A stretch of DNA of 64,000 nt from Amoeboaphelidium protococcarum X5 (lineage: Eukaryota; Fungi; Aphelidiomycota), in assembly GCA_023515725.1 (NCBI GenBank), contig JALDTO010000192.1:124001-188000 (forward strand). The letters run 5' to 3'. How positions within the stretch are numbered: the first letter of the stretch is position 1; every line of letters starts with the position of its first letter. The notes beneath the pieces were generated by a model that worked only from the letters and a program-made list of their open reading frames with translations, did no database searches and had not been told where the DNA came from. A program made the position numbers and the translations under genes. Shown here in pieces: positions 1 through 43,876 of the stretch.

Positions 1-326
1 GAACTCCACAGCAGAAGATGGAACTCACTTTCAAGATGTATGATCTGAACAGAGATGGACGCGTCACTTAGAAGGAGATTGTCAAGTTTTTGGCTCAAAT
101 CTACTCAACGTATTACAATGAAGATCACACTGCTCAAGTGAAGGAAATGGCGAAGCGACTGTTTGATGATCTCGACATTAACGGCGATGGAGAGTTGTCT
201 TTGGAAGAGTACAAGCTGAGTGCATTGAAAGAGCCCATGCTAATGAACTTTGTTGAACAATTCCTTGGCGAAAAGGAGTGGGATGCTAACAACAATGAGT
301 AGTAACTAGTATGCGAAGATGACTGA
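1..326 (+). CDS. EF-hand calcium sensor (neuronal calcium sensor/frequenin/calcineurin-B-like), 5' truncated
   Basis: Table-6 translation ..KMELTFKMYDLNRDGRVT(Q=TAG)KEI..LFDDLDINGDGELSLEEY..: two EF-hand loops. Reads through TAG/TAA at 300-305 to TGA at 324-326. Confidence 0.85.
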
Positions 327-684
327 AATTGTAATTGAATTAAACATGTTTTCATATATATCTTTTTTAAGGTACTGTAGCTTCCTATGTATAGCCTCAA
401 AATTGCCTATAGAATGGCGCGCCACAGCAAGATTACTCTTTCTCTTGAAACAAACACATGGGGCTCTCAAGGACTAAAGTCACTCATTACACACCCGAGA
501 CGCGCGTGAATCCTTTAACAACTCACCAAGCCGAATCATCCCGCAGAATGAAGCACCCCCTGATCACTCACTCCTACTTTGAATCTCGTGACAATACCGT
601 CCTTCAATCTTCTTTTGCTAGTTATTTTTGAAGTGAAATATTATCGTTATACTTTTATCAAATCATCATAAATACCGAGTAATA

Positions 685-909
685 ATGAAGTCTTATATTG
701 TCGTCTTTAAGTAGGGCACCGCTAAAAATACCATCGAATAGGCTGTGGATCAGGTGAAGAAGGAGGGTGGTAAAATTGGTCATCGTTACGACTCTGTGCT
801 ACTTGGCTTTAGCTGTGAGATTCCTGAGCAGTTGACCGACTCCCTCAAGTCTTTGGAAGGTGTCGACTATGTTGAAGAGGATCAGGTTATGACTATTTAA
901 AAAGAATGA
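685..909 (+). CDS. Standalone peptidase inhibitor I9 (subtilisin-propeptide-like, POIA1/PBI2 type), 74 aa
   Basis: MKSYIVVFKQGT..GGKIGHRYDSVLLGFSCEIP..VDYVEEDQVMTI matches the I9 pattern YIVxxK..GF..V.YVE.D..V. Absent from the ORF track because of internal TAG codons. Confidence 0.85.
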
Positions 910-972
910 TCACTCTAAAATCTATATACAATTGGCGTAGAATTCTAACATTTTTTATAATTCATTGATTTC

Positions 973-2514
973 TCAATCTTTTTATACCGGCTCTTAATGT
1001 TACGACTGCTGTTGTTGTAAAAGCTATTGCAATATCTTCTCTATATTGTCTAATCGCTCATCTGTCGTATTAGATTTCGAGGATAACGTTGATTTCTGCA
1101 GGATCTAGGACGACCTCATAGATAGCCGTGGTGTATCATGATCAACGTCAGCACCGTGAGCACTTTCAATATCAGACACGAGACTATTCCGCGAAGATTT
1201 AGTAGTAAGTTTCTTCATTGCAATACCAGCTTTACCATCTACTGCATTATTATCATCAACAACTTCTTCTTCATCATCGTCGTCGCGTTGAATCCACAAT
1301 CCATCTGGAGTCTTATACTTGCTCATCACTGACCACACGGCAATGTAATTTCGACCCACAATGATGGAGGGGAGCGCGATAGAGAGAATACCAAAAGACA
1401 TTGATATGAACGCAACAACCTTACCCCATGCCGTAAGAGGCACCACTTCACCGTACCCAGTCGTGGTCAGAGTTTCAACAATGAACCACATTGACGAGGG
1501 AATAGACATGAAATTGGATTCTATAAAAGGCTCCAGAGATGTGTAAAACTTCTTCTACTCCTGCGAATATGTACCACGCTCAGCAAAGTAAATCAGTGTG
1601 CCCAGACACGTACATATAGTCACAATGAAGAGCATCAAGGCAATCAGAGATTCGGCACTCTTGGCCACAGCAATGAGAAGGACTTCGATAGACAGTTGCA
1701 GCAGAGACTAATACTTGTACACTCTGAACATTCGAAATAAGCGAAATAGACGGAGGATAGAGAATCTCTGAGTCTCCATGTACGGCCTACCGCTGACAAT
1801 AAGTTCAATAAAGAATGGACAGAATGCCAGGATATCAATTATAAACAGTGGACTCTTACAGAAGGACAGAAACTTCTCTAGATTATACGTGTGGCCATAG
1901 AGTCTTACAGCGAATTCCACAGCAAATATTCCCAGTACCACAATCTCTGCATATAGAAAGAACCTCCCCGGAATCGTGTCTTCATTGTTCATGGACGGCA
2001 TAGTCTCAATGATCATTACCAGAGCATTGAGTAGGATAAGTAAGGCGAGTAAAATATTCCAAGAAAAAGCCAGATATGAAGAAGACGGGTCCTCCATTAT
2101 AAGATATGCCCATCGCTTGTATCTGTTCCTGATATAAGCAGCTTCAGAACTCTTAACCATGTACGTGTTGCCGTTATCACTATTACCGTGGCGCGTGTTA
2201 TCCCCACCATCGAGCCGCCAGAATTCATCTTGACTGCTATTTTCAATTAGTCGCCGCTCTTCAGAACGATCGCTGCTATTATTATTATTATAATTATTAA
2301 GCATCATACTCGTACTAGGACGACGATGGGGTTAAGATTATTACTACGCTTGATTATGATCATTGTTAGCTGCCAGAGTCTCGTGGCTGTTCTTGAACTT
2401 GTGAGATTTACGTCTAGCCACTGATGGCTCATTCGCAAGCCCACCACTTTGCACATTTCCTCCATCATAATTATACAAAGGGTCGTCCAATTCCAAATCA
2501 AAATTCTGCTCCAT
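973..2514 (-). CDS. Voltage-gated potassium channel (Kv-like, 6TM), about 513 aa, intronless
   Basis: ORFs 1708-2307 and 1105-1509 are one frame. S4 RFSILRLFRLFRMFRVYKY, pore WFIVETLTTTGYGEVVP, S6 GILSIALPSIIVG. ATG at 2514, TGA at 973. Confidence 0.93.
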
Positions 2515-2693
2515 CTGGTATTATTTTTGATCAGTTTGACTCAAATGCTGTTTATCTTCTCCAGTCAATCAATGTGGTTTTATCAAAAAGAGAAATCACA
2601 AAAAAATATACATCTCTTCGCTTCTTTCACTGTACCAATTGAAAGTCAAATTTAACGCGATTAAAAGACAGTCATCATTATAACAAATAAAAT

Positions 2694-3384
2694 ATGCCAG
2701 CAATTAGGCGCGAAAGAAATGCAGGCAGACAGCTGTCGAACACAATAAGGCAGCCTGATGATTTCGATGACAGCAAGACGAATATCACAATGAACACCAC
2801 AATGTCCATCAGTAAAAAAGAGAAAAGGCGTATGAAGCGCGATCTGTTCATATAGAGTAAGATTTACAGTCTTTCCATAGACACACCTGATAATTATTAA
2901 CACTACCGCCACTCATGTAAATTATGTAGAACTGGAGCCATAGTATGCTTTAATGTAATAGGAGAAGTAGAAGCAAAAGAAGCGATTATCCACAAAAAGT
3001 CAGCCGCTGATGAATGTCGATACTTTGTAAGACGCGTTATATCAGGATGGTATTAGCAGTAGTTTTATAAATTCTAGTAAAGATAAAGAAGTCCAAATTC
3101 CAAGCACTGATATTAAAAGTACGAAATTGACCAAAGATGCTCTGCTGGATTTTGATTAGTAATAGATGGAAGTGGAAATGGCGGTACGACAGAAGATGAA
3201 AGAGTAATCTCATTAGTAGAACCAACCTGCTCCTAAAAATCGCGTCAAGTCTCATAAAGGTCGTTAGAACACACTTAGAAAGGAGTTGGAATAGATGAAG
3301 ATGGTGTATCAGAACGATAGATTCCAGAAGGATCCGGTTGGGTCATTGTAATAACATATAAAGCTGACGGCCAAATACCTGTGA
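2694..3384 (+). CDS. Ribosome biogenesis protein SLX9/FAM207A-like (one intron, 2857-2929)
   Basis: SKKEKRRMKRDLFIQKL near the N-terminus and a C-terminal RKELEQMKMVYQNDRFQKDPVGSLQQHI motif. A GTAAG..TAG intron restores the frame. Confidence 0.7.
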
Positions 3385-31929: not shown

Positions 31930-34758
31930 TCACATCGTTAAATAAAACACTCCAAAAAGCAGAACGGTCAGAGCAACAATCACTTCCAACCCAAAGTTAA
32001 AATTGATTCTTAAAGGCTAAGATCCACTGCTGCTGCTAGTCTACTGAGACATCGCTGCGGTTTGTAAACGGTAAACAGAATCCGGATTTGCACACAAAGG
32101 AAAATTCGGACTTAAATTAATCTGCAATGGTCCAGCTGCACTCTCAGCGAATAATGGGCCCCAAACTACACCAGGTCCAGCATTAACCTTAGCAAGTGGT
32201 GCCAAAACCATACCGCGGACACCTACTCCACTAATTTATAGAGATGTGGCATTAGGAAAGTTGAAGATGGCAGGAATATCTTTCAGCGATTCCATGTTCA
32301 TATTGACAAATCCACCAGCGGACCCGAAGATGTTAAACACCAGGATGGTATTGCTAGTAGCACCTTTAATCGCAAAATCATTGACTACTCTATCAGTAAA
32401 CATGGATCCATTCTAGATATTAATCACTTCATAGCGATTAAGACCACCAATCTAGATAGTCATCAAACCATACCTGACATTAACACTCAGAGTAGTGGGA
32501 ACCCAAGATGCCATCATCTGCGACAACTGGATTAACTTCTAATTAATGGTATCGAAATTGATAAAATTAGGAACTTTCCTTAAGCTACACTCCTGCTCCA
32601 AAACATAACCGATATTGTTATTGGGCAAAGAAGGCTTGGCAGTCGAATCATCACCAACAACAATATTACCATAATAGTTACGACCAGTCAACCAATTGAC
32701 CAATTTACCGCCAATGACCAATGTTGCTGATTTACATTCATCAATGCCATACAGCTAGTCAGCGATAGAGAAGCCGCCAGCAAAAGCTGCATCTCCACCA
32801 ACAGCCAATCTTCCTTAAACATCTGAACTAGCAGAATACGAACCACTAAAGAAGGCATTAAAAGGATATGCGCCACCAACATCAATACAAGTAGGAGTAG
32901 GCAGAGGGGTATAGGTGGTGGTAGTGGATGGAATAGTAGAAGTGGAGGTAGCCAGTACAGTAACAGTACTAGTGCTGAAGATAGTCGTAGTAATGGTGGT
33001 ACCAGATTCAGTGATAGTCTACGTCATGGTATAGGTTTGTGTCTAAAACACAGTAGACGTTTGTATAATAGTGGTGGCAGCAACAGTAACAGTCACTGTA
33101 ACCTACGGCAGAGTTATAGACTTGGTCTCAGTAACAGTAACTGGGGCTTGCGTGATCGTGATGTAAGAAGTCACTGGAGGACCACCGCTACCTCCGCTAA
33201 CAGTAACAGTCTCAGTAAGTCTCTCTGTAGTTGTGATGAAGCTGTACAACGTCTACATCACTGTCTAAGTCATAAATGAGGTTACAGTGGTCAAAGCAGT
33301 CTCACCAGGGATAAAGGTAATGATAGTAGTTGGCACCAGCACAGTAGAAGTGACAGTACTAAAGATGGTGGTAGAGATAGTAGAGTACACAGGAGAAGTC
33401 TCAGTCACAGTTACCAAAGACGTCTAAGTGATAGTCAACGCAGTAGTAACCGTGGTAGCAGGCTAATTAACAGTAACAGTCACAGGGCAAGAGGTGACAT
33501 ACTAAATATTAGTTGTAGTCACTGTCTAAGTACCAGTTATAGTAACGATTCCAGTGCTCGTTATGTAGCTAGTAATAACTTGACCATCTTCAGTGACAGT
33601 TAAAGTGGTTACAGTACCAGGCAGAGTGGACGTCTCAGTTATGGTGAAGGTAGATGCAGGCAGATACGTAGTGGTAGTTTCAGTATTAGTAATAAACTGC
33701 GTGTTGGTAATTGTCAGAGTAGTAGTAACCGGAGGTTTTTCAACTGTTACAAAATAAACAGTAATAACCGGCGGCAATGTGATCAGACTTGTGATAGTTC
33801 TCCGTGGCAGTGTGATAGTAGTAGTAACAGGATACGACACGGTTCTAGTAATAAATGAAGTCACAGGCTGAGGACGGATAATTATATTCGAGGTGACAAC
33901 ATGAGAAACAGTTGTCGTCCTAGTTAACGTGACAGGTGGCAGCTAAATGATACTAGTCCTAATAATCGTACTGAATAAAGTACTTACCACAGTCTTAGTA
34001 ATCGTCGATGTGACAGTGACAGGCTGCGGTGGAGTACTTCCACAGTCATCAGAAGCACACAACTCTCCACTAGATACAGCGTGAGCAACTAAGTTCACAG
34101 TACGTTTACTGTCCCAGCCAGTAAAGGTAAACGTCACATCTTTACCATCGCACTAACCAACATCACAATCCTTTCGACAAGCAGGATTATTAGACCAGCC
34201 ATTAGTACTGCAGGAAAATGAGTGCTGATAAACTTCTTTTAAGGGGAAATAGCTAACATAGAGCTCGACTGAGCGGAACGTCTTCTTACACTTCTTATAG
34301 CCAACATAACGGACAGTAATCGTGCCAGAACAGGAGAACTTTACTTGCACAGTGCCAACAGCTCTACCTTTACTAAGGTCATTGTTATCAGCATTCATGT
34401 ACAGAATGTGAGAGTTCCAGCTTTCACTGCATTTCAAATTACTTATTTGCCAGCCAAAGAGATGGTTGGTCAATCTCAGCTAGATGAAAGAGGTATCACC
34501 ATGAGCAAAAATCGTCTACCAATCACACGAAGGGCTCGAAGGAGGACTGAAAGCAGGTGGTGCGCCGACAGGATTCCAGTTGAAGACACGCTTATCCAAC
34601 GAACCATTATTCAGCGGCTTATAAGTCGGAATAGGAGAACGGCGCTTTCTCTGCAGCAGCGGGGAGTCATTGAACCAGTCACTCTTCTCAAAGACAAAGA
34701 CTTGCAAGACAACAGCTATAGCTATTACAAAACCAGCATAAGACCAGTTGAAACCCAT
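31930..34758 (-). CDS. Surface adhesin-like protein, copy 1 (signal/propeptide, Cys-rich domain, Thr/Val stalk, choice-of-anchor-A-like domain, C-terminal anchor), 942 aa
   Basis: One frame. SDVQGRLAVGGDA..FSIADQL..LVIGG..IFNFPNATSL..GMVLAPLA..GVVWG; hydrophobic tail LEVIVALTVLLFGVFYLTM-TGA. Confidence 0.85.
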
Positions 34759-35831
34759 GATTATTATACAGATAGATATCTCACAAAGAAGTTTATACTA
34801 CTATACAAACGGACGGCGGTAGAGAGTATAAATCGATGAAACAACAACAATGGGTCGGAATTTTTGAGCCAAACAAACAAAAGACTGACTAAGCAGCGGG
34901 AGAATTTAAATGCTCGGCCGAGAGCCCATTGTCTGATGCTGAAACAAGCGCGCGAGAGGCTGCAAACAAACCAACTTTCGTTTCTCCTTTCTGCTCTACT
35001 GTGCGGAGGGCCAGTCTGCGTATCGCTTCTTGCTTTACCGAGCGCTACTTGCTCTGCATTCAGTATGCGTATTATATATTTGGGTTCCTTTTTATGTACA
35101 GTAGATACAGGTAGCTACAGGAATATAGTATTCCAAGTCTGCTACATATTCATAAAGAAATTTGAGATTCCTTAAATATGGATTTTATCTACTCATGCAA
35201 GAAAAATTTGTCGCGATTCATTAACCATGAGACGACGCAGAGTAGTATACGCTTTATCTTCGTCTGATTTCCAAATTCCAAAGGATCCGTGGAGTTTACA
35301 GTAGCTTAAATGCCGCAGGAGCATATCTTTACAACCTTTAATTTGTGTAAACAATTGAAAGTTCGAATCAATACAACTATTTAAACAGATGTGTTTGACG
35401 CGTACTATTCGTGATTATTCAAGAGATTGACATTACATACTCACACTGTAAGACTTTTTTCTAACGCCTCGGTTTGTCAAACGGAACAAGGATCGTATTT
35501 CGTTGAATAAAAGACTTCTACTGGGTAAGATCGGACATCAGATGACGTATAGATAAAGACTACCCAGCGCAGCGCCGATTATTAATGCTTAATCTACAGT
35601 CTAATATTGCCCGAAAAGTCATTTGTGTTTTAACTCTATTATATTGAATTCTCCAGTATTACCGTGATACGATGATGATATGTATGGAAACGTCAAAATC
35701 GATGGTTTTGGCTTAAAGTTGCTTAACTAAAATTTGTGTGGCCAGTTTAGAGAATGGAGAATTATGATCAAGTTATTGACCTATAGGTTATCATAAACAA
35801 ACATCATCACACATTTTATACCACAATACTC

Positions 35832-38660
35832 TCACATTGTTAAATAAAACATTCCAAAAAGAAGCACAGTCAAAGCTCCAATCACTTCCAACCCAAAGTT
35901 AAAATTGATTCTTAAAGGCTAAGATCCACTGCTGCTGCTAGTCTACTGAGACATCGCTGCAGTTTACAAGCCGTAAATAGAATCAGGATTAGGACATAAT
36001 GGGAATTCTGGAACCAGATTAATCTGCAAAGGTCCAGCAGCACTTTCAGCATAAACTGGGCCCCAAACAACGCCAGGACCAGCATTAACGTTAGCAAGTG
36101 GTGCCAAAACCATGCCACGGACACCTACTCCACTAATTTATAGAGATGTGGCATTAGGAAAGTTGAAGATGGTAGGAATATCCTTCAGCGATTCCATGTT
36201 CATATTGACGAATCCACCAGCGGACCCGAAGATGTTAAACACCAGGATAGTATTGTTAGTAGCACCTTTAATTGCAAAATCATTGACCACTCTACTAGTA
36301 AACATGGATCCATTCTAAATATTAATTACTTCATAGCGATTCAGACCACCAACCTAGATAGTCATCAAACCATACCTGACATTAACATTGAGAGTAGTAG
36401 GAACCCAAGATGCCATCTTCTGCGACAACTGGATTAATTTTTGACTAATAGCAGTAAAATCTATAAAGTTAGGAACTTTCCTTATGCTACACTCCTGCTC
36501 CAAAACATAACCGATATTATTGTTGGGTACAGAAGGCTTGGCAGTCGAATCATCACCAACAACAATATTACCATAATAGTTACGACCAGTCAACCAATTG
36601 ACCAATTTACCGCCAATGACTAATGTAGCTGATTTACATTCATCGATGCCATAGAGCTAGTCAGCGATAGAGAAGCCGCCAGCAAAAGCTGCATCACCAC
36701 CAACAGCTAGTCTTCCTTGAACATCAGAGCTAGCAGAGTACGAGCCACTAAAGAACGCATTAAAAGGATATGCTCCACCAACATCAATACAAGTAGGAGT
36801 AGGCAGAGGGGTATAGGTGGTAGTAGTGGATGGAATAGTAGAAGTGGAGGTAGCCAGTACAGTAACAGTACTAGTGCTGAAGATAGTCGTAGTAATGGTG
36901 GTACCAGATTCAGTGATAGTCTACGTCATGGTATAGGTTTGTGTCTAAAACACAGTAGACGTTTGTATAATAGTGGTGGCAGCAACAGTAACAGTCACTG
37001 TAACCTACGGCAGAGTTATAGACTTGGTCTCAGTAACAGTAACAGGAGCTTATGTAATAGTAATATAGGAAGTCACTGGCGGTCCACCACCACCTCCACT
37101 AACAGTAACAGTCTCTGTAATTCTCTCTGTAGTTGTGATATAGCTGTACAAAGTCTACATCACTGTTTAGGTCATAAATGAGGTTACAGTGGTCAAAGCA
37201 GTCTCACCAGGGATAAAGGTAATGATAGTAGTTGGCACCAGCACAGTAGACGTTGTCGTACTAAAGATTGTGGTAGAGATAGTAGAGTACACAGGAGAAG
37301 TCTCAGTCACAGTTACCAAAGACGTCTAAGTAATAGTCAACGCAGTCGTAATCGTGGTAGCAGGCTAATTAACAGTAACAGTCACAGGGCCAGATGTAAT
37401 GTACTAGATATTAGTTGTAGTCACTGTCTCAGTACCAGTTATAGTGATTATTCCAGTGCTTGTTATGTAGCTAGTAATCACTTGACCATCTTCAGTAATA
37501 GTTAAAGTGGTTACCGTCCCAGGCAGAGTGGAAGTCTCAGTTATGGTGAAGGTAGATGCAGGCAGATACGTAGTGGTAGTTTCAGTATTAGTAACAAACT
37601 GCGTGTTGGTAATTGTCAGAGTAGTAGTAACCGGAGGTTTTTCAACTGTTACAAAATAAATAGTAGTAACCGGCGGCAATGTGATCAGACTTGTGATAGT
37701 TCTCGGTGGCAGTGTGATAGTAGTAGTAACAGGATACGACACAGTTCTAGTAATAAATGAAGTCACAGGCTGAGGACGGATAATTATAGTCGAGGTGACA
37801 ACATGAGAAACACTTGTCGTCCTCGTTATAGTGACAGGTGGCAGCTAAATGATACTAGTCCTAATAATCGTACTGAATAAAGTACTTACCACAGTCTTAG
37901 TTATCGTCGATGTGACAGTGACAGTCTGCGGTGGAGTACTTCCACAATCATCGCTAGCACACAACTCTCCATTAGATACAGCGTGGGCAACAAAGTACAC
38001 AGTACGTCTACTGTCCCAGCCAGTAAAGGTAAACGTCACATCTTTACCATCGCACTGGCCACCATCACAATCCTTTCGACAAGCAGGATCATTAGATCTT
38101 GCATTGGGGCTGCAAGTAAATTAACTAGGATTCAGAGACGGGCAGCTAGAGTACCCAACATGGAAATTGATCTAGCGAAAAGTCTTCTTACACTTCTTAT
38201 AGCCAACATAACGGACAGTGATAGTGCCAGTACAAGAGAACTTGACCTACACAGTGCCAACAGCTCTACCTCTATTGCAGTCATTGTTATCAGCATTCAT
38301 GTACAGAATGTTAGAGTCCCAGCTTTCACTGCATCTCAAACTACTTCTCTGCCAGCCCCAGAGACTGTTGGTCAATCTCAGCTGGATGAAAGAGGTATCA
38401 CCATAAGCAAAAATCGTCTAGCGATCACACGAAGCGCTCGAAGGAGGCGAGTAGGAAGGTGGTGAGTAGGAAGGAGGCCAGTAGAAAGTACGCTTATCCA
38501 ACGTACCATTATTTAGTGGCTTATAAGTCGGAATTGGGGAACGGCGCTTTCTCTGCAGCAGCGGAGAGTCATTGAACCAGTCATTCTTCTCAAAGACAAA
38601 GACTTGCAAGACAACAGCTATAGCTATTACAAACCCAGCATAAGACCAATTGAAACCCAT
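35832..38660 (-). CDS. Surface adhesin-like protein, copy 2, 942 aa
   Basis: Paralog of 31930-34758 with the same length and architecture. Confidence 0.85.
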
Positions 38661-39487
38661 GACTATTATACAGATAGATATCTCACAAAGAAGTTTATAC
38701 TACTATACAAACGTATGGAGTTAGAAAGTATGAATCTTGTGAAACAACAACAACAATGGGTTGGAGACTTTGCGGAAAACAAAAAGACTGACTCAGCAGC
38801 GGGAGAATTTATATGTTGGGCCGAGCGGCCATTGCCTGAAGCTGAAACAAGCGCTCGCGAGTCTGCAAACAAACCAACTTTCGTTTCACCTCGCTGTACT
38901 GTGCAGCGGGCCAGACTGCGTATCTTCCCGTGCTTTACGCAGCACTACTTGCTCTGCTTGCATTCGGTGTTAGGGAAGATTTGAGCTCCTTTTTCATTTG
39001 ATTACAGGTGGCTACCGAAATGTAGGTTTTCAAGTCTGTTACTCATTCATAGAGTCTATAAAAGATTGACATTGCATACTCAAACTGTTATATTATTTGC
39101 TAACGCTCTAGTTTGTTACAATGCATCTGGGACGCATTTCGTTGAATTGAAGGCTCCAATCGGGTAAAATGAGACATCGGATTACGTATACATAAGCACT
39201 TCCACGTGCCGACTGTTTATTTACAAGCTAGTGTTTATATGGTTTTCGCAAATACTTCTGTGTGTTCAGAGTTTTTTGAATTGAAATATTCGGTTTCACC
39301 ATTAAAGCATGCATACAGTAGTATAATGCTATAAATGGAAGCAGTGTCAAAAAGTAATATATTTAGCTTTAAATTGCTAACCTCAGACTTTTGTGTATAT
39401 AATTAATAGACTGAAGAATTATAATCAAATCACTATTCAATAGTTCTTTATTAATCCACATAATCACACATCATACATACGATACTT

Positions 39488-42433
39488 TCACATCGTTATA
39501 TAAAACACTCCAAAGAGCAGCACAGTCAGAGCGACAATCAATTCAAGTCCAAAATTAAAATTGATTCTCATTGGCAGAGACCCACTGCTGCTATCTGTCG
39601 TCTATGACATCGCTGGGGTTTACAAGCCGTAAATAGAATCAGGATTAGGACATAATGGGAATTCTGGAACCAGATTGATCTGTAAAGGTCCGGCAGCACT
39701 TTCAGCATATACTGGGCCCCAAACGACACCAGGTCCAGCATTAATGTTAGCGAATGGTGCCAAAACCATGCCACGAACAGCTACTCCATTGATATCCAGA
39801 GAAGTAGCATTAGGAAAGTTGAAGATGGTAGGAATGTCAATCATCGCATCCATATTCATATCGATGAATCCACCAGCGGATCCAAAGATGTTAAACACTA
39901 AGATGGTATTATTGGTGGCACCTTCAATCGCAAAGTCGTTAATAATCCTATCGGTAAACATGGATCCGTTCTAAATATTGATGATTTCATAGCGATTTAG
40001 ACCACCAACTTTGATTGTCATAAGACCATACTTGACATTAACACTCAAAGCAGTAGGAACCCAAGATGCCATAGTCTGGGACAATTGAATCAACTTCTAA
40101 CTGATGGTATCGAAATTGATAAAATTAGGAATTTTCTTTATAGAACACTCCGGCTCCAAAACATAACCGATATTATTGTTGGGTACAGATGGCTTCGCAG
40201 TCGAATCATCACCAACAACAATATTACCATAATAGTTACGACCGGTCAACCAATTGACCAATTTACCGCCAATGACTAACGTAGCTGATTTACATTAATC
40301 AATGCCATACAGCTAATCAGCGATAGAGAAGCCGCCAGCAAAAGCTGCATCACCACCAACAGCCAGTCTTCCTTGAACATCAGAGCTAGCAGAGTACGAG
40401 CCACTAAAGAACGCATTGAAAGGATATGCTCCACCAACATCAATACAAGTAGGAGTAGGCAGAGGGGTATAGGTGGTAGTTGTGGATGGAATAGTAGAAG
40501 TAGAGGTTGCCAAAACAGATACAGTGCTTGTACTGAAAATAGTAGTGGTAATGGTAGTGCCAGATTCAGTGATAGTCTACGTCATAGTATAGGTTTGTGT
40601 TTAAAACACAGTAGACGTTTAAATAATAGTGGTGGCAGCAACAGTAACAGTCACTGTAACCTACGGCAGAGTAATAGACTGTGTCTCAGTAACAGTAACT
40701 GGGGCTTGAGTAATAGTAATATAGGAAGTCACAGGCGGTCCACCACCACCTCCACTAACAGTAACAGTCTCAGTAATTCTTTCGGTTATAGTGATGTAGC
40801 TGTACAGTGTCTGCATCACTGTCTAAGTCATAAATGAGGTAACAGTGGTCAAAGCAGTCTCACCAGGAATAAAGGTAATGATAGTAGTTGGCACCAGCAC
40901 AGTAGACGTTGTCGTACTAAAGACGGTCGTGGAAATAGTAGAGTACACAGGAGAAGTCTCAGTCACAGTTACCAAAGACGTCTAAGTGATAGTCAACGCA
41001 GTAGTAATTGTGGTAGCAGGCTAATTAACAGTAACAGTGACAGGATCCAAAGTGATGTATTAAACATTAGTTGTGGTTACTGTCTAAGTACCAGTTATAG
41101 TAACAATTCCTGTGCTCGTAATGTAGCTAGTAATCACTTGACCATCTTCAGTGATAGTTAAAGTGGTTACGGTCCCAGGCAGAGTGGAAGTCTCAGTTAT
41201 GGTGAAGGTAGATGCAGGCAGATAAGTAGTGGTAGTTTCAGTATTAGTAACAAACTGAGTGTTAGTAATTGTCAGAGTAGTAGTAATCGGAGGTTTGTCA
41301 ACTGTTACAGTATAAGTAGTAGTGACCGGCGGCAACGTGATCAGACTTGTGATAGTTCTTGGTGGCAGTGTTAAAGTTGAAGTAACAGGATACGACACAC
41401 TTCTTGTGATATAGGACGTCACGGGCGGAGGGCGGATAGTTAAAGTCGTGGATACAACATGAGTAACAGTCGTGGCCCTCGTTATTGTGACAGGGGGCAA
41501 TTAGATGGTACTAGTCCTAATAATCGTACTAAAAACTGTACTCACCATAGTTTTAGTCAAAGTAGACGTGACGGTAACAGTTTATGGCGGAGAGCTTCCA
41601 CAATCATCAGAAGCGCACAGCTCTGCATTGGATACAGCGTGAGCAACAAAGTACACAGTGCGTCTACTATCCCAACCAGTGAACGTCAACGTTATATCCT
41701 TACCATCACACTGACCGCTATCACAGTCCTTTCTACAGGCTGGGTCATTCGATCTGCCATTAGGACTACATGTAAATAGGCTAGGATTGACAGAGGGGCA
41801 GCTGGAATAACCAACATGGAAATTGACTGAGCGGAACGTCTTCCTACACTACTTCAAACCAACGTAACGGGCGGTAATAGTACCAGAACAAGAGAACTTG
41901 ACTTGTAAATTACCAACAACTCTACCGTTACTAAAGATGTTGTTGACAGCGTTCATATACAGAACACTAGAGACCCAGTTTTCACTGCACCTTAAACTAC
42001 TTCTCTACCAACCCCATAGACTGTTGGTCAATCTCAGCTAGATGAAAGAGGTATCACCATAAGCAAAAATCGTCTAGCGATCACATTATGTAGAAGGAGC
42101 AGGTGGCTAGGGAGCGGGAGGCTAAGGAGCAGGTGGCTAAGGAGAAGGAGGTTAAGGAGGAGGGGGAGGTGGCGGCCTAGTAGGCGGTGGAGGTGGCGGA
42201 GGAGGAGGAGGGCAGTAGGAAGGAGGTCTGTACGAAGGGGGTCTGCAGCCATAATAGTAAGTACGTTTTACCAGTGTACCATTATTCAGCGGCTTATAAG
42301 TCGGGATTGGGGAACGGCGTTTTCTTTAGAACAGTGGAGAGTCAATGAGCCAGTCACTCTTCTCAAAGACAAAGACTTGCAAGACAATAGCTATAGCTAT
42401 TACAAAGCCAGCATAAGACCAATTAAAGCCCAT
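39488..42433 (-). CDS. Surface adhesin-like protein, copy 3, with an extra Pro-rich (PQPPA) segment, 981 aa
   Basis: Paralog; insert RPPSYRPPSYCPPPPPPPPPPTRPPPPPPPQPPSPQPPAPQPPAPQPPAP after the propeptide. Confidence 0.85.
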
Positions 42434-43876
42434 CGTCTATGCAGATATTGATCAAGGGATGGAGTGTTAACGATTAAATACAACGAACGGGCCAGGGATT
42501 GTTTCAAGTAAAACAACAATGATTTTGAGAGCGTTTCGCGAAATTCAACACATTCCATAAACAACAAACAATGGACAGCAGAGCCACGTGATGAATTAAA
42601 AGATAACAAGAATATTAAGAGAGTTTTCGAAGGCAGGCAGATTAGATTGAAAGCACGTCTATTGAAAAGCTTTCGAATAATTCTTACGCTTACAAGATCT
42701 AAGCAGAGGATTGCCAGGCAGGCTTTGTACGCCCGCGCGTGACTGCAGAACACTTCAACATGAGCGTCGCGATTTCCCGTTAACAGATTGCCGAACGGTG
42801 GCGGCTTACTGTATCCTCTTATTAAGTCAATGTTAAATTTTGAGCGTCTATTAAAAGAGATTTAAACGCTTGTAATATCAAACTTTTCTCAATTGGGGTC
42901 TTAAATCAGTGGTTGAAATCAACAATATTACACGTTCATTTTTATGGTATGATCATATAATGAAGGAAAAGTCTTTCTAGTCGAATCAAAGACTTTCGCG
43001 AAGATCATCTGGAATGACGTATTTCTCTTCTTTCGCCTGTGAGATCACTGCTGACCGATAGTATTCAAGCTTATACGGTGATAAGATGATTAGTAAAGGT
43101 TTATTTCTACTAACGCAATAGTCCCGATTTATGTCAGTGTAAAGTGGTCCTCTTCCACCACTTAGAATTGCTAGGGATGGTGAGAGTATTGACATAATGC
43201 GTGCCCGGTTGCTGTATTAATCAAGAAAGAGGGGGATCTTGGAGAGTGATCTGCTTTGCTCTACGTTTGCTTAAAAGCATCTGCACACTCTATCTCATCA
43301 GTAATTACAGTAGTACGACCGATTACTTGATGAAAATGACTGGGACCTGTATTATTGGACTGCTGGATAGAAGGAGGTGCCTGAGCATTTGCGAGATAAT
43401 GCGATTTTGAAAATGATGACGAAACATTTTAAAAATGAAGGCCGCAAGATTTTGAAAATGCCATCGTTAGATGAGTAGAAGAGTTGATCGGCCTACCAAT
43501 AGCAGATTATTGAATTTATGGTATATGAATTAGTTTATGACGGGTTCGATTTTTTAATTAAGATATTTTGTGGCGTTGTCAGTGGTTGATCTATCTAGCG
43601 GTTAGAAGATGACAGTGGTACGCACGGCAATACAATCTACATCATTTTTTGCGCGTCATAACTTGTTCAGACTCCATATCATCAGGCTTAGACTGTTAAC
43701 GCAAATATCGCGTAAGGGACTGGTTTCAGTGGGGAAATTAACTTGTAGTGTCGGAACTTAAACGCGTGCTAAATTTAGACACATCAGTAGTAATTGCTCT
43801 TCAACTGATACTAAAACGATTAGGCATTCAGTTTCTTCGTTGTCAACGTTGCAACCGAAATTGATTGCAGGTAAAA

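Follow-up and report, generated by a model that had tools for sequence, protein, structure and literature searches.

Proteins with a domain of the choice-of-anchor A (CAA) type have been described in bacteria and in several eukaryotes. In bacteria (TIGR04215, for example Bacillus anthracis BA_0871), the domain, a β-helix, is combined with a C-terminal sorting/anchoring signal (LPXTG, PEP-CTERM, or type IX tail). In Acanthamoeba, the Jonah lectins, composed of a signal peptide, a Thr-rich region, and CAA, occur in abundance in the cyst wall and bind cellulose and, more weakly, chitin; in diatoms, the Trailins are found solely in the adhesive trails used for traction (PMC6541295; bioRxiv 10.1101/2024.02.02.578540; bioRxiv 10.1101/2023.03.06.531300). 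Fungal adhesins with a glycosylphosphatidylinositol (GPI) anchor (Als, Flo, and Epa) are built from a signal peptide, an N-terminal globular domain, a long Ser/Thr-rich stalk with many β-branched residues, and a GPI signal, and form tandem families of variable copy number. Here, a tandem array of three genes (G1, G2, and G3) encoding predicted surface proteins with a CAA domain is described, located on a 64,000-nucleotide stretch of contig JALDTO010000192.1 of the aphelid Amoeboaphelidium protococcarum X5 (hereafter the window, to which positions refer unless a contig or locus is named).

From the N to the C terminus, the long proteins of this family comprise a hydrophobic leader, a Cys-rich domain (the tip), a stalk rich in Thr, Ile, and Val, the CAA domain, and a putative GPI-type signal. 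Like Jonah-1 (ACA1_164810), the proteins are predicted to be secreted, have one ice-binding-like CAA β-helix preceded by an extended Thr-rich region, and belong to a multi-gene family, so that the Jonah-type layout of signal peptide, Thr-rich region, and CAA β-helix is present. Jonah-1 itself binds cellulose/chitin and is made for the wall but, in contrast to the aphelid proteins, has neither a C-terminal anchor signal nor a Cys-rich distal domain of the aphelid kind. The Trailins of Craspedostauros australis also combine CAA with Pro/Thr/Ser-rich regions, are extracellular adhesives, and have a predicted fold resembling that of ice-binding proteins (IBPs); they are, however, very large, secreted without a membrane anchor, and nested in bacterial clades in the published tree, whereas all checked members of the clade containing the aphelid CAA domains are eukaryotic. 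With the bacterial proteins, the aphelid ones have the hidden Markov model (HMM) family (123 bits) and the combination of β-helix and C-terminal signal in common, but the bacterial tail is replaced by a putative eukaryotic GPI-type signal and the best identity is 38%. As in fungal GPI adhesins, a Ser/Thr-rich stalk lies between the putative ligand domain and the predicted anchor (368 aa; Thr 35%, Ser 9%); the tip, however, is unrelated to PA14 or the Als Ig-like domain in sequence or recognizable fold, and the fungal proteins have no CAA module at the stalk base. A. occidentale KAI3659413.1 (P0005; 663 aa; annotated as "hypothetical protein") resembles the A. protococcarum proteins in its leader, Thr-rich segment, CAA domain of the same subclade, and GPI-like tail, but has two tandem CAA domains, joins its parts by a Thr-rich linker that is only short, and lacks the Cys-rich tip.

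Three tandem genes, their code, and their expression

When TAA and TAG are read as sense and TGA as stop, three uninterrupted open reading frames (ORFs) occupy the minus strand between positions 31930 and 42433 (Table 1). Translation of this strand places TAA/TAG throughout one frame per gene (21–28 in-frame codons in each) and a single TGA solely at the end; under the standard or bacterial code, the same region yields short ORFs alone. Where one paralog has TAA or TAG, 50 of the 77 aligned codons of the other paralogs are CAA or CAG, and TAA/TAG is therefore read as Gln; this reassignment has been documented for A. protococcarum (PMC5304391). Every long ORF of the window likewise needs TAA/TAG as sense and TGA as the sole stop, and the standard code makes the whole window look almost gene-free. 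The first-pass annotation had listed three intronless tandem paralogs of 942–981 aa, invisible in the standard code. Array and paralogs were recovered as described; the strand, which it had not named, is minus for all three.

Protein identity among G1, G2, and G3 is 84–90%. G2 agrees residue for residue with P0154, a protein that the database lists under no accession, a GenBank entry of A. protococcarum that is 97.8% identical to G2 is labeled "hypothetical protein", and G1 is 99.6% identical to P0171, named MP228_006168 in the assembly of another strain, where the same three-gene array is annotated (MP228_006168 to MP228_006170). The gene models of G1–G3 are thus public but uncharacterized and still "hypothetical" in GenBank. 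An upstream start of G1 at 35196 was not adopted because the MGFNW start at 34758 is common to the five long paralogs; the G1 frame is open for 146 codons 5′ of this conserved start (34759–35196, minus strand). Val-rich ORFs on the plus strand (32267–33583, 37849–38733, and 41937–42650) were rejected as genes, being the antisense image of the ACN-rich coding of the Thr stalk.

The genome encodes seven CAA domains, three in the window, two in tandem on contig C235, and one each on contigs C13 and C244. C235 is a syntenic sister region, in which the flanking genes of the array recur in inverted order; it contains the orthologs of G3 (H1) and G2 (H2; KAI3632194.1), both at a synonymous divergence (dS) of ~0.3, whereas G1 is an extra copy. 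This dS is consistent with two diverged subgenomes or haplotypes. The duplication unit comprises ~3.3 kb at 89% identity and includes ~400 nt 5′ of the start codon (upstream regions of G1 and G2 compared). The proposed tandem amplification of the family is therefore seen at both loci, with three copies here and two on C235. The short paralog on C13 and C244, the counterpart of which in A. occidentale is KAI3658371.1 (P0023), consists of a signal peptide, CAA, and a Pro/Thr-rich tail, and has no anchor.

Pairwise ratios of nonsynonymous (dN) to synonymous divergence were between 0.05 and 0.2, with dS of 0.25–1.0, in every region. The dN was highest in the tip (0.09–0.19 vs 0.02–0.07 for stalk and CAA), and dN/dS of the tip was 0.45 for G1, the extra copy, versus G2. 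In the stalk, dS was lower between neighboring genes (0.14 for G1–G2 and 0.05 for H1–H2), which suggests gene conversion.

In two public runs (X6 and X10), word depth was 300–3,000 for genic contigs versus 4–50 in the spacers, and it was flat in a DNA run. Contigs from X6 and X10 contain 8 and 23 non-templated T's directly before position 39430, where the genome is not a T-run; an AATAAA hexamer on the minus strand (39448–39453) lies 18–23 nt upstream of this poly(A) site of G3. Contigs from a freshwater metatranscriptome match G3 at 99–100%. No splice joints were reported in the run contigs over the genes, which is consistent with their being intronless. The genes are, thus, transcribed and under constraint. 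Elsewhere in the window, X10 contigs end in non-templated poly(A) after 43542 and delimit a short plus-strand transcript (43122–43542) with ORFs of just 77–175 aa.

CAA domain, anchor signal, stalk, and tip

The full-length proteins match PF20597 (pAdhesive_15) with 131.5 bits (cut-off 23.8) over profile positions 3–252 of 254, and G1-, G2-, and G3-type proteins match TIGR04215 with 118.9–123.3 bits (cut-off 29). Even the stop-free pieces of the window are collinear on PF20597 (positions 2–41, 55–128, and 163–252 of 254) and match TIGR04215, and a six-frame read-through search scored the three CAA copies of the window at 126–134 bits. An AlphaFold2 model (71-sequence alignment) has a mean predicted local distance difference test score (pLDDT) of 90.9 and a predicted template modeling score of 0.91, and consists of a β-helix with one long flanking helix (domain residues 116–131). 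Its top structural match is FfIBP (4nu2; Z 16.7, root-mean-square deviation 3.0 Å over 198 residues); ColAFP (3WP9; Z 16.1) and the pilus-tip protein ComZ (Z 15.4) score almost as high, and the cellulose-binding Tapirins are more distant (Z 8.8). The domain is, thus, predicted to adopt the IBP β-helix fold, in line with published CAA domains. Its identity as choice-of-anchor A, which had been proposed from the motif series, stands on both profiles and on the modeled fold. None of the bacterial sorting signals (LPXTG, PEP-CTERM, type IX tail) was found, CAA being all that Pfam and NCBIfam matched when the full proteins were scanned.

Hydropathy identifies just two hydrophobic segments, at the extreme N and C termini, and no cytosolic residues follow the hydrophobic C-terminal end of G2. 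The leader contains an RKRR and a KR dibasic site, both kept in all five long paralogs, and is recognizable in A. occidentale P0005 as MxFxW followed by a hydrophobic stretch and RNRR. After the leader follows a short Pro/Ser/Tyr-rich segment, which in G3 holds the 39-aa extensin-like Pro insert (residue numbering here and throughout the architecture is that of G2). At the other end, the last 42 residues appear, as judged by eye, to have the layout of a classic GPI-addition signal. We infer propeptide processing, GPI anchoring, and glycosylation; the enzymes that these steps would require are found in the genome, with six matches to kexin-type P-domains as well as genes for the GPI-transamidase subunit Gpi16 and for PMT O-mannosyltransferases.

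The stalk (368 aa) contains 35% Thr, 11% Ile, 10% Val, 9% Ser, and 7% Pro, and no N-glycosylation sequons were found in it. All elements that the first-pass annotation had noted along the chain were found again, namely, the hydrophobic N terminus, the RKRR/KR sites, the Cys-rich domain, the SDVQGRLAVGG...FNFPNAT...VLAP series, and the hydrophobic C-terminal tail, and the terminal position of both hydrophobic segments agrees with the layout of anchored secretory surface proteins that it had proposed. The stalk is present as well but is somewhat shorter than the ~380 aa given before, and rich in Thr, Ile, and Val rather than in Thr and Val.

Fourteen Cys residues are invariant across the proteins, 10 of them in the N-terminal domain. 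A six-frame search of the genome confined this domain to the five long paralogs (G1–G3 and the two on C235). Neither Pfam nor NCBIfam matched it (pieces and full-length protein), a word-indexed protein search with residues 60–265 returned the organism's own array alone, a PDB sequence-profile search gave no match, and a metagenome scan with the two most conserved tip peptides found no relatives. The Pfam, NCBIfam, and PDB-profile searches likewise gave no homology to known adhesin heads (PA14, Als Ig-like). The AlphaFold2 model of the tip, built from five near-identical sequences, is all-β but poor (pLDDT 50.7). With this model, Foldseek found nothing in the PDB at E ≤ 0.001, a shape search of the ESM Atlas reached TM ≤ 0.46, and a wide VIA structural search gave noise-level β-sandwich matches (best Z 5.4); a feature search of the Atlas peaked at 0.79, below the useful level. 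By sequence and model, the tip appears as an orphan in all searches run; its fold is not claimed as new.

Table 1. Coordinates of the array, its protein regions, and related loci (residues in G2 numbering; positions in the window unless a contig or locus is given).
Feature	Residues or length	Position	Strand	Remarks
G1	942 aa	31930–34758	minus	TAA/TAG = Gln; TGA stop
G2	942 aa	35832–38660	minus	
G3	981 aa	39488–42433	minus	Pro-rich 39-aa insert
G2 leader	1–57	38490–38660	minus	hydrophobic ~5–27, then RKRR 37–40, KR 56–57
G3 Pro-rich extensin-like segment		42086–42250	minus	contains the 39-aa insert absent from G1 and G2
G2 Cys-rich N-terminal domain (tip)	78–258	37887–38429	minus	10 invariant Cys, predicted all-β
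G1 tip equivalent		33985–34527	minus	
G3 tip equivalent		41543–42085	minus	
G2 stalk	259–626	36783–37886	minus	Thr/Ile/Val-rich, non-repetitive
G1 stalk equivalent		32881–33984	minus	
G3 stalk equivalent		40439–41542	minus	
G2 CAA/pAdhesive_15 domain	628–880	36021–36779	minus	predicted β-helix
G1 CAA domain		32119–32877	minus	
G3 CAA domain		39677–40435	minus	
G2 C-terminal GPI-type signal (candidate)	901–942	35832–35960	minus	Ser/Gly-rich candidate ω region, spacer, 19-residue hydrophobic end, TGA
G3 3′ untranslated region	58 nt	39430–39487	minus	non-templated poly(T) = minus-strand poly(A) tail at 39430
C235 locus	973 and 946 aa	G000:C235:523126–530253		two copies (L011 3127–6048; L012 414–3254)
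Short secreted CAA paralog	372–373 aa	C13 (L009 3527–4642); C244 (L010 3455–4573)	minus	

Relatives of the CAA domain

An exhaustive HMMER search with a 116-aa CAA piece returned 232 representatives, none of the nearest relatives being bacterial. P0006, from a metagenome, shows 52% identity and combines stalk, CAA, and tail in the same way; A. occidentale contributes P0005 and P0023. Several relatives are encoded on metagenome contigs with eukaryotic neighbors, that is, GINS/RFC1/homeodomain, TCTP/myosin TH1, HSP70/Got1, and SNAP/U-box/dynamin genes; on one of them, TCTP is 77% identical to that of A. protococcarum, and RFC1 of another organism shows only 28–44% identity. To these sequences, 34 named bacterial CAA domains from GTDB genomes, retrieved by a scan with a ten-sequence alignment, were added. 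The best bacterial identity was 38% (Candidatus Vecturithrix), compared with 39–44% for some eukaryotic relatives. Protein searches with the CAA region and with a 71-sequence profile gave no named eukaryotic relatives, only unnamed or bacterial rows, and no match came from scanning metagenomes a second time with close CAA sequences.

In an unrooted maximum-likelihood tree of 87 domains, sampled by similarity to the query, without named Acanthamoeba, diatom, or fungal CAA sequences, and supported by the Shimodaira–Hasegawa-like approximate likelihood-ratio test (SH-aLRT) alone, all aphelid copies fall into a clade of 24 rows (SH-aLRT 96), 14 of which are verified as aphelid or from eukaryotic contigs, 10 unknown, and none a named bacterium. 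All 36 bacterial rows are in a separate clade of 44 rows (SH-aLRT 97). A larger tree of 132 rows, of the same kind, agrees. Within the aphelid clade, a 15-row subclade (SH-aLRT 97) unites the genes of the window with P0006, with P0005 of A. occidentale, and with several proteins from metagenomes, and all members checked that have a complete C terminus (P0005, P0006, P0001, P0019, P0157, and P0178) end in a GPI-like manner. Because leader and GPI-like tail are common to the window proteins and A. occidentale P0005, the anchored CAA protein would predate the split of the two Amoeboaphelidium species; judged from the sequences, the place of the second CAA domain of A. occidentale is taken in A. 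protococcarum by a long stalk and a tip domain that is new.

Two further observations concern the gene neighborhood of the relatives. In two uncultured eukaryotes (L017 5967–11551; L018 300–9218), the CAA gene comes directly after a gene of the HSP70 family, and a Peptidase_S9 gene is found a short way upstream with one or two small ORFs in between; the best Peptidase_S9 match in the A. protococcarum genome and the short paralog of C13 are ~10 kb apart. This gives a weak hint that the order Peptidase_S9–HSP70–CAA is an old synteny. In another uncultured eukaryote, P0010 (L014 7617–9860) combines a ricin-B lectin, ephrin-receptor-like Cys repeats, and CAA, and lies next to another CAA gene, the product of which ends in a GPI-like tail. 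The domain combination of P0010 supports a carbohydrate-binding context for CAA in the clade that contains the aphelids.

Competing explanations and a possible role at the cell surface

That G1–G3 might not be real genes, that is, chance ORFs, pseudogenes, or bacterial contamination, is suggested by nothing but their absence under the standard code, where the listed ORFs are short. This notion is already refuted by 942–981 open codons under the documented code of the organism, dN/dS far below 1 at large dS, polyadenylated transcripts, the second, syntenic locus (C235) flanked by the same genes, and recurrence of the three-gene array in the assembly of another strain. Another question is whether the CAA domain is an ice-binding or antifreeze protein, as every one of its top matches in structure is a DUF3494 ice-binding protein (Z 16–17). 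This appears extremely improbable, as a Pfam scan (E ≤ 0.01) lists PF20597 alone and not DUF3494/Ice_binding, ComZ from a thermophile has the same fold, the diatom study judged its own CAA domain an unlikely ice binder for want of the motifs and the surface pattern, and the organism is a freshwater/pond parasitoid of green algae. Little more can be said for a recent horizontal transfer of the CAA module, or of the whole gene, from bacteria with subsequent amplification, which the first-pass annotation had considered. The family is mostly bacterial and bears a bacterial name, a bacterial source has been argued for other eukaryotic CAA domains, and the best bacterial identity is little below that of some eukaryotic relatives. 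Against this, all seven copies and those of A. occidentale are in one clade (SH-aLRT 96) without a named bacterium, apart from the 36 named bacterial sequences; a relative's contig encodes the highly similar TCTP mentioned above; leader and GPI-like tail are common with A. occidentale; the domain uses TAA/TAG for Gln, in G1 even at the conserved glutamine of SDVQGR; and the GC content of the CAA domain is that of its surroundings. A recent transfer is, thus, very improbable, and, of the phylogenetic comparison that had been proposed, the grouping of the aphelids came out with sequences from eukaryotic contigs rather than with bacteria. Nor is a "bacterial-type" domain peculiar here, CAA having been described in Acanthamoeba, diatoms, rotifers, Neocallimastigomycota, and Mucor. 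As far as the sequences tell, the CAA domain belongs to an established eukaryotic radiation and, despite its name, does not speak for gene transfer in recent times; an ancient transfer, from bacteria to eukaryotes or the reverse, is possible.

Aphelids are the closest relatives, or sister group, of the fungi; they kill cultivated green algae and cause algal pond crashes. After attaching to the wall of the alga, their zoospores encyst within a chitin wall and penetrate by a germ tube, and we know of no molecule that attaches aphelid zoospores or cysts to host cells. Because of this attachment and cyst biology, and because of the settings in which CAA is found in other eukaryotes, G1–G3 are read as surface adhesins or lectins. 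The best explanation, which we regard as reasonably probable, is that they are surface glycoproteins of the secretory pathway, with the build of fungal GPI adhesins assembled from other parts, by which the zoospore or cyst adheres to a wall. The hydrophobic leader would direct the protein into the endoplasmic reticulum; a kexin-type protease probably trims the propeptide at RKRR and/or KR, and a GPI anchor probably takes the place of the hydrophobic signal at the C terminus. In the mature protein, the CAA β-helix would rest on the membrane or wall, a stalk of ~370 residues rich in Thr, Ile, and Val, probably O-mannosylated, would extend from it, and the lineage-specific, disulfide-rich β domain would form the distal tip. 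The CAA module, by analogy, may stick to a polysaccharide or solid surface, and the faster-evolving tip may be the variable, ligand-selecting part. As the CAA domain is only 20–30 residues away from the predicted anchor site, it should be at the base of the molecule rather than a second distal head; of the "two-headed" adhesin proposed before, the two globular domains remain, but not the second head.

The target of adhesion may be the wall of the host alga, the parasite's own chitin cyst wall, or both. It is plausible that the tip and/or the CAA domain binds the host wall; it is an equally good version that CAA binds the nascent chitin wall of the parasite itself while the stalk displays the tip. 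A more restricted alternative, possible though on the unlikely side, is that the proteins are structural lectins which, tied in by the GPI remnant, build or coat the chitin wall of the parasite's own cysts or spores, without a part in host recognition. The abundance of Jonah lectins in the cyst wall and their affinity for cellulose and, less so, chitin would fit this, as would the chitin wall of aphelid cysts and the position of CAA next to the anchor, where such a wall would form. The long stalk and the disulfide-rich distal domain, which is the most divergent part of the protein, rather suggest outward display, and Jonah lectins carry no anchor. Several points also weigh against the preferred explanation, that is, anchored adhesins. 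The leader has no basic n-region and no clear AXA site and could be a signal anchor; the GPI-addition call was made by eye, and the tail might instead serve as an ordinary C-terminal membrane anchor; the tip has no recognizable fold, so that its role is a guess; and the runs that show transcription (X6 and X10) are coded as to organism and kind. Furthermore, the stalk is non-repetitive and under purifying selection (dN/dS ~0.1–0.16), which is unusual for a mere glycosylated spacer; this selection could mean folding or self-association, and the stalk may, thus, be more than a spacer. Finally, the cyst-wall glycopolymer bound by Jonah-1 is undetermined, its β-helix has no linear aromatic array, and no mutation test was made; the analogy to Jonah therefore carries limited weight.

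The CAA domain, its presence in eukaryotes, and the GenBank gene models were already known, and, among the papers searched that mention "choice-of-anchor A", none was on aphelids. New is that aphelids carry a CAA family, with an architecture that joins an orphan tip, a Thr/Ile/Val stalk, CAA, and a GPI-type signal; new are also the evidence for expression and constraint, the difference of two versus three copies between the sister contigs, and the position of the aphelid domains within a eukaryotic clade. The array offers a candidate, that is, an expressed, conserved, tandemly amplified, predicted surface protein in which CAA is joined to a stalk and putative anchor like those of fungal adhesins. 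That the anchored CAA proteins are the host-recognition and attachment molecules of aphelids, and that their copy number and the variation of the tip shape which algae can be infected, is a tentative and rather unlikely extension of the adhesin explanation. If true, it would provide a first molecular handle on how aphelids dock to their hosts, and it would extend the "choice of anchor" logic to the eukaryotic GPI anchor.

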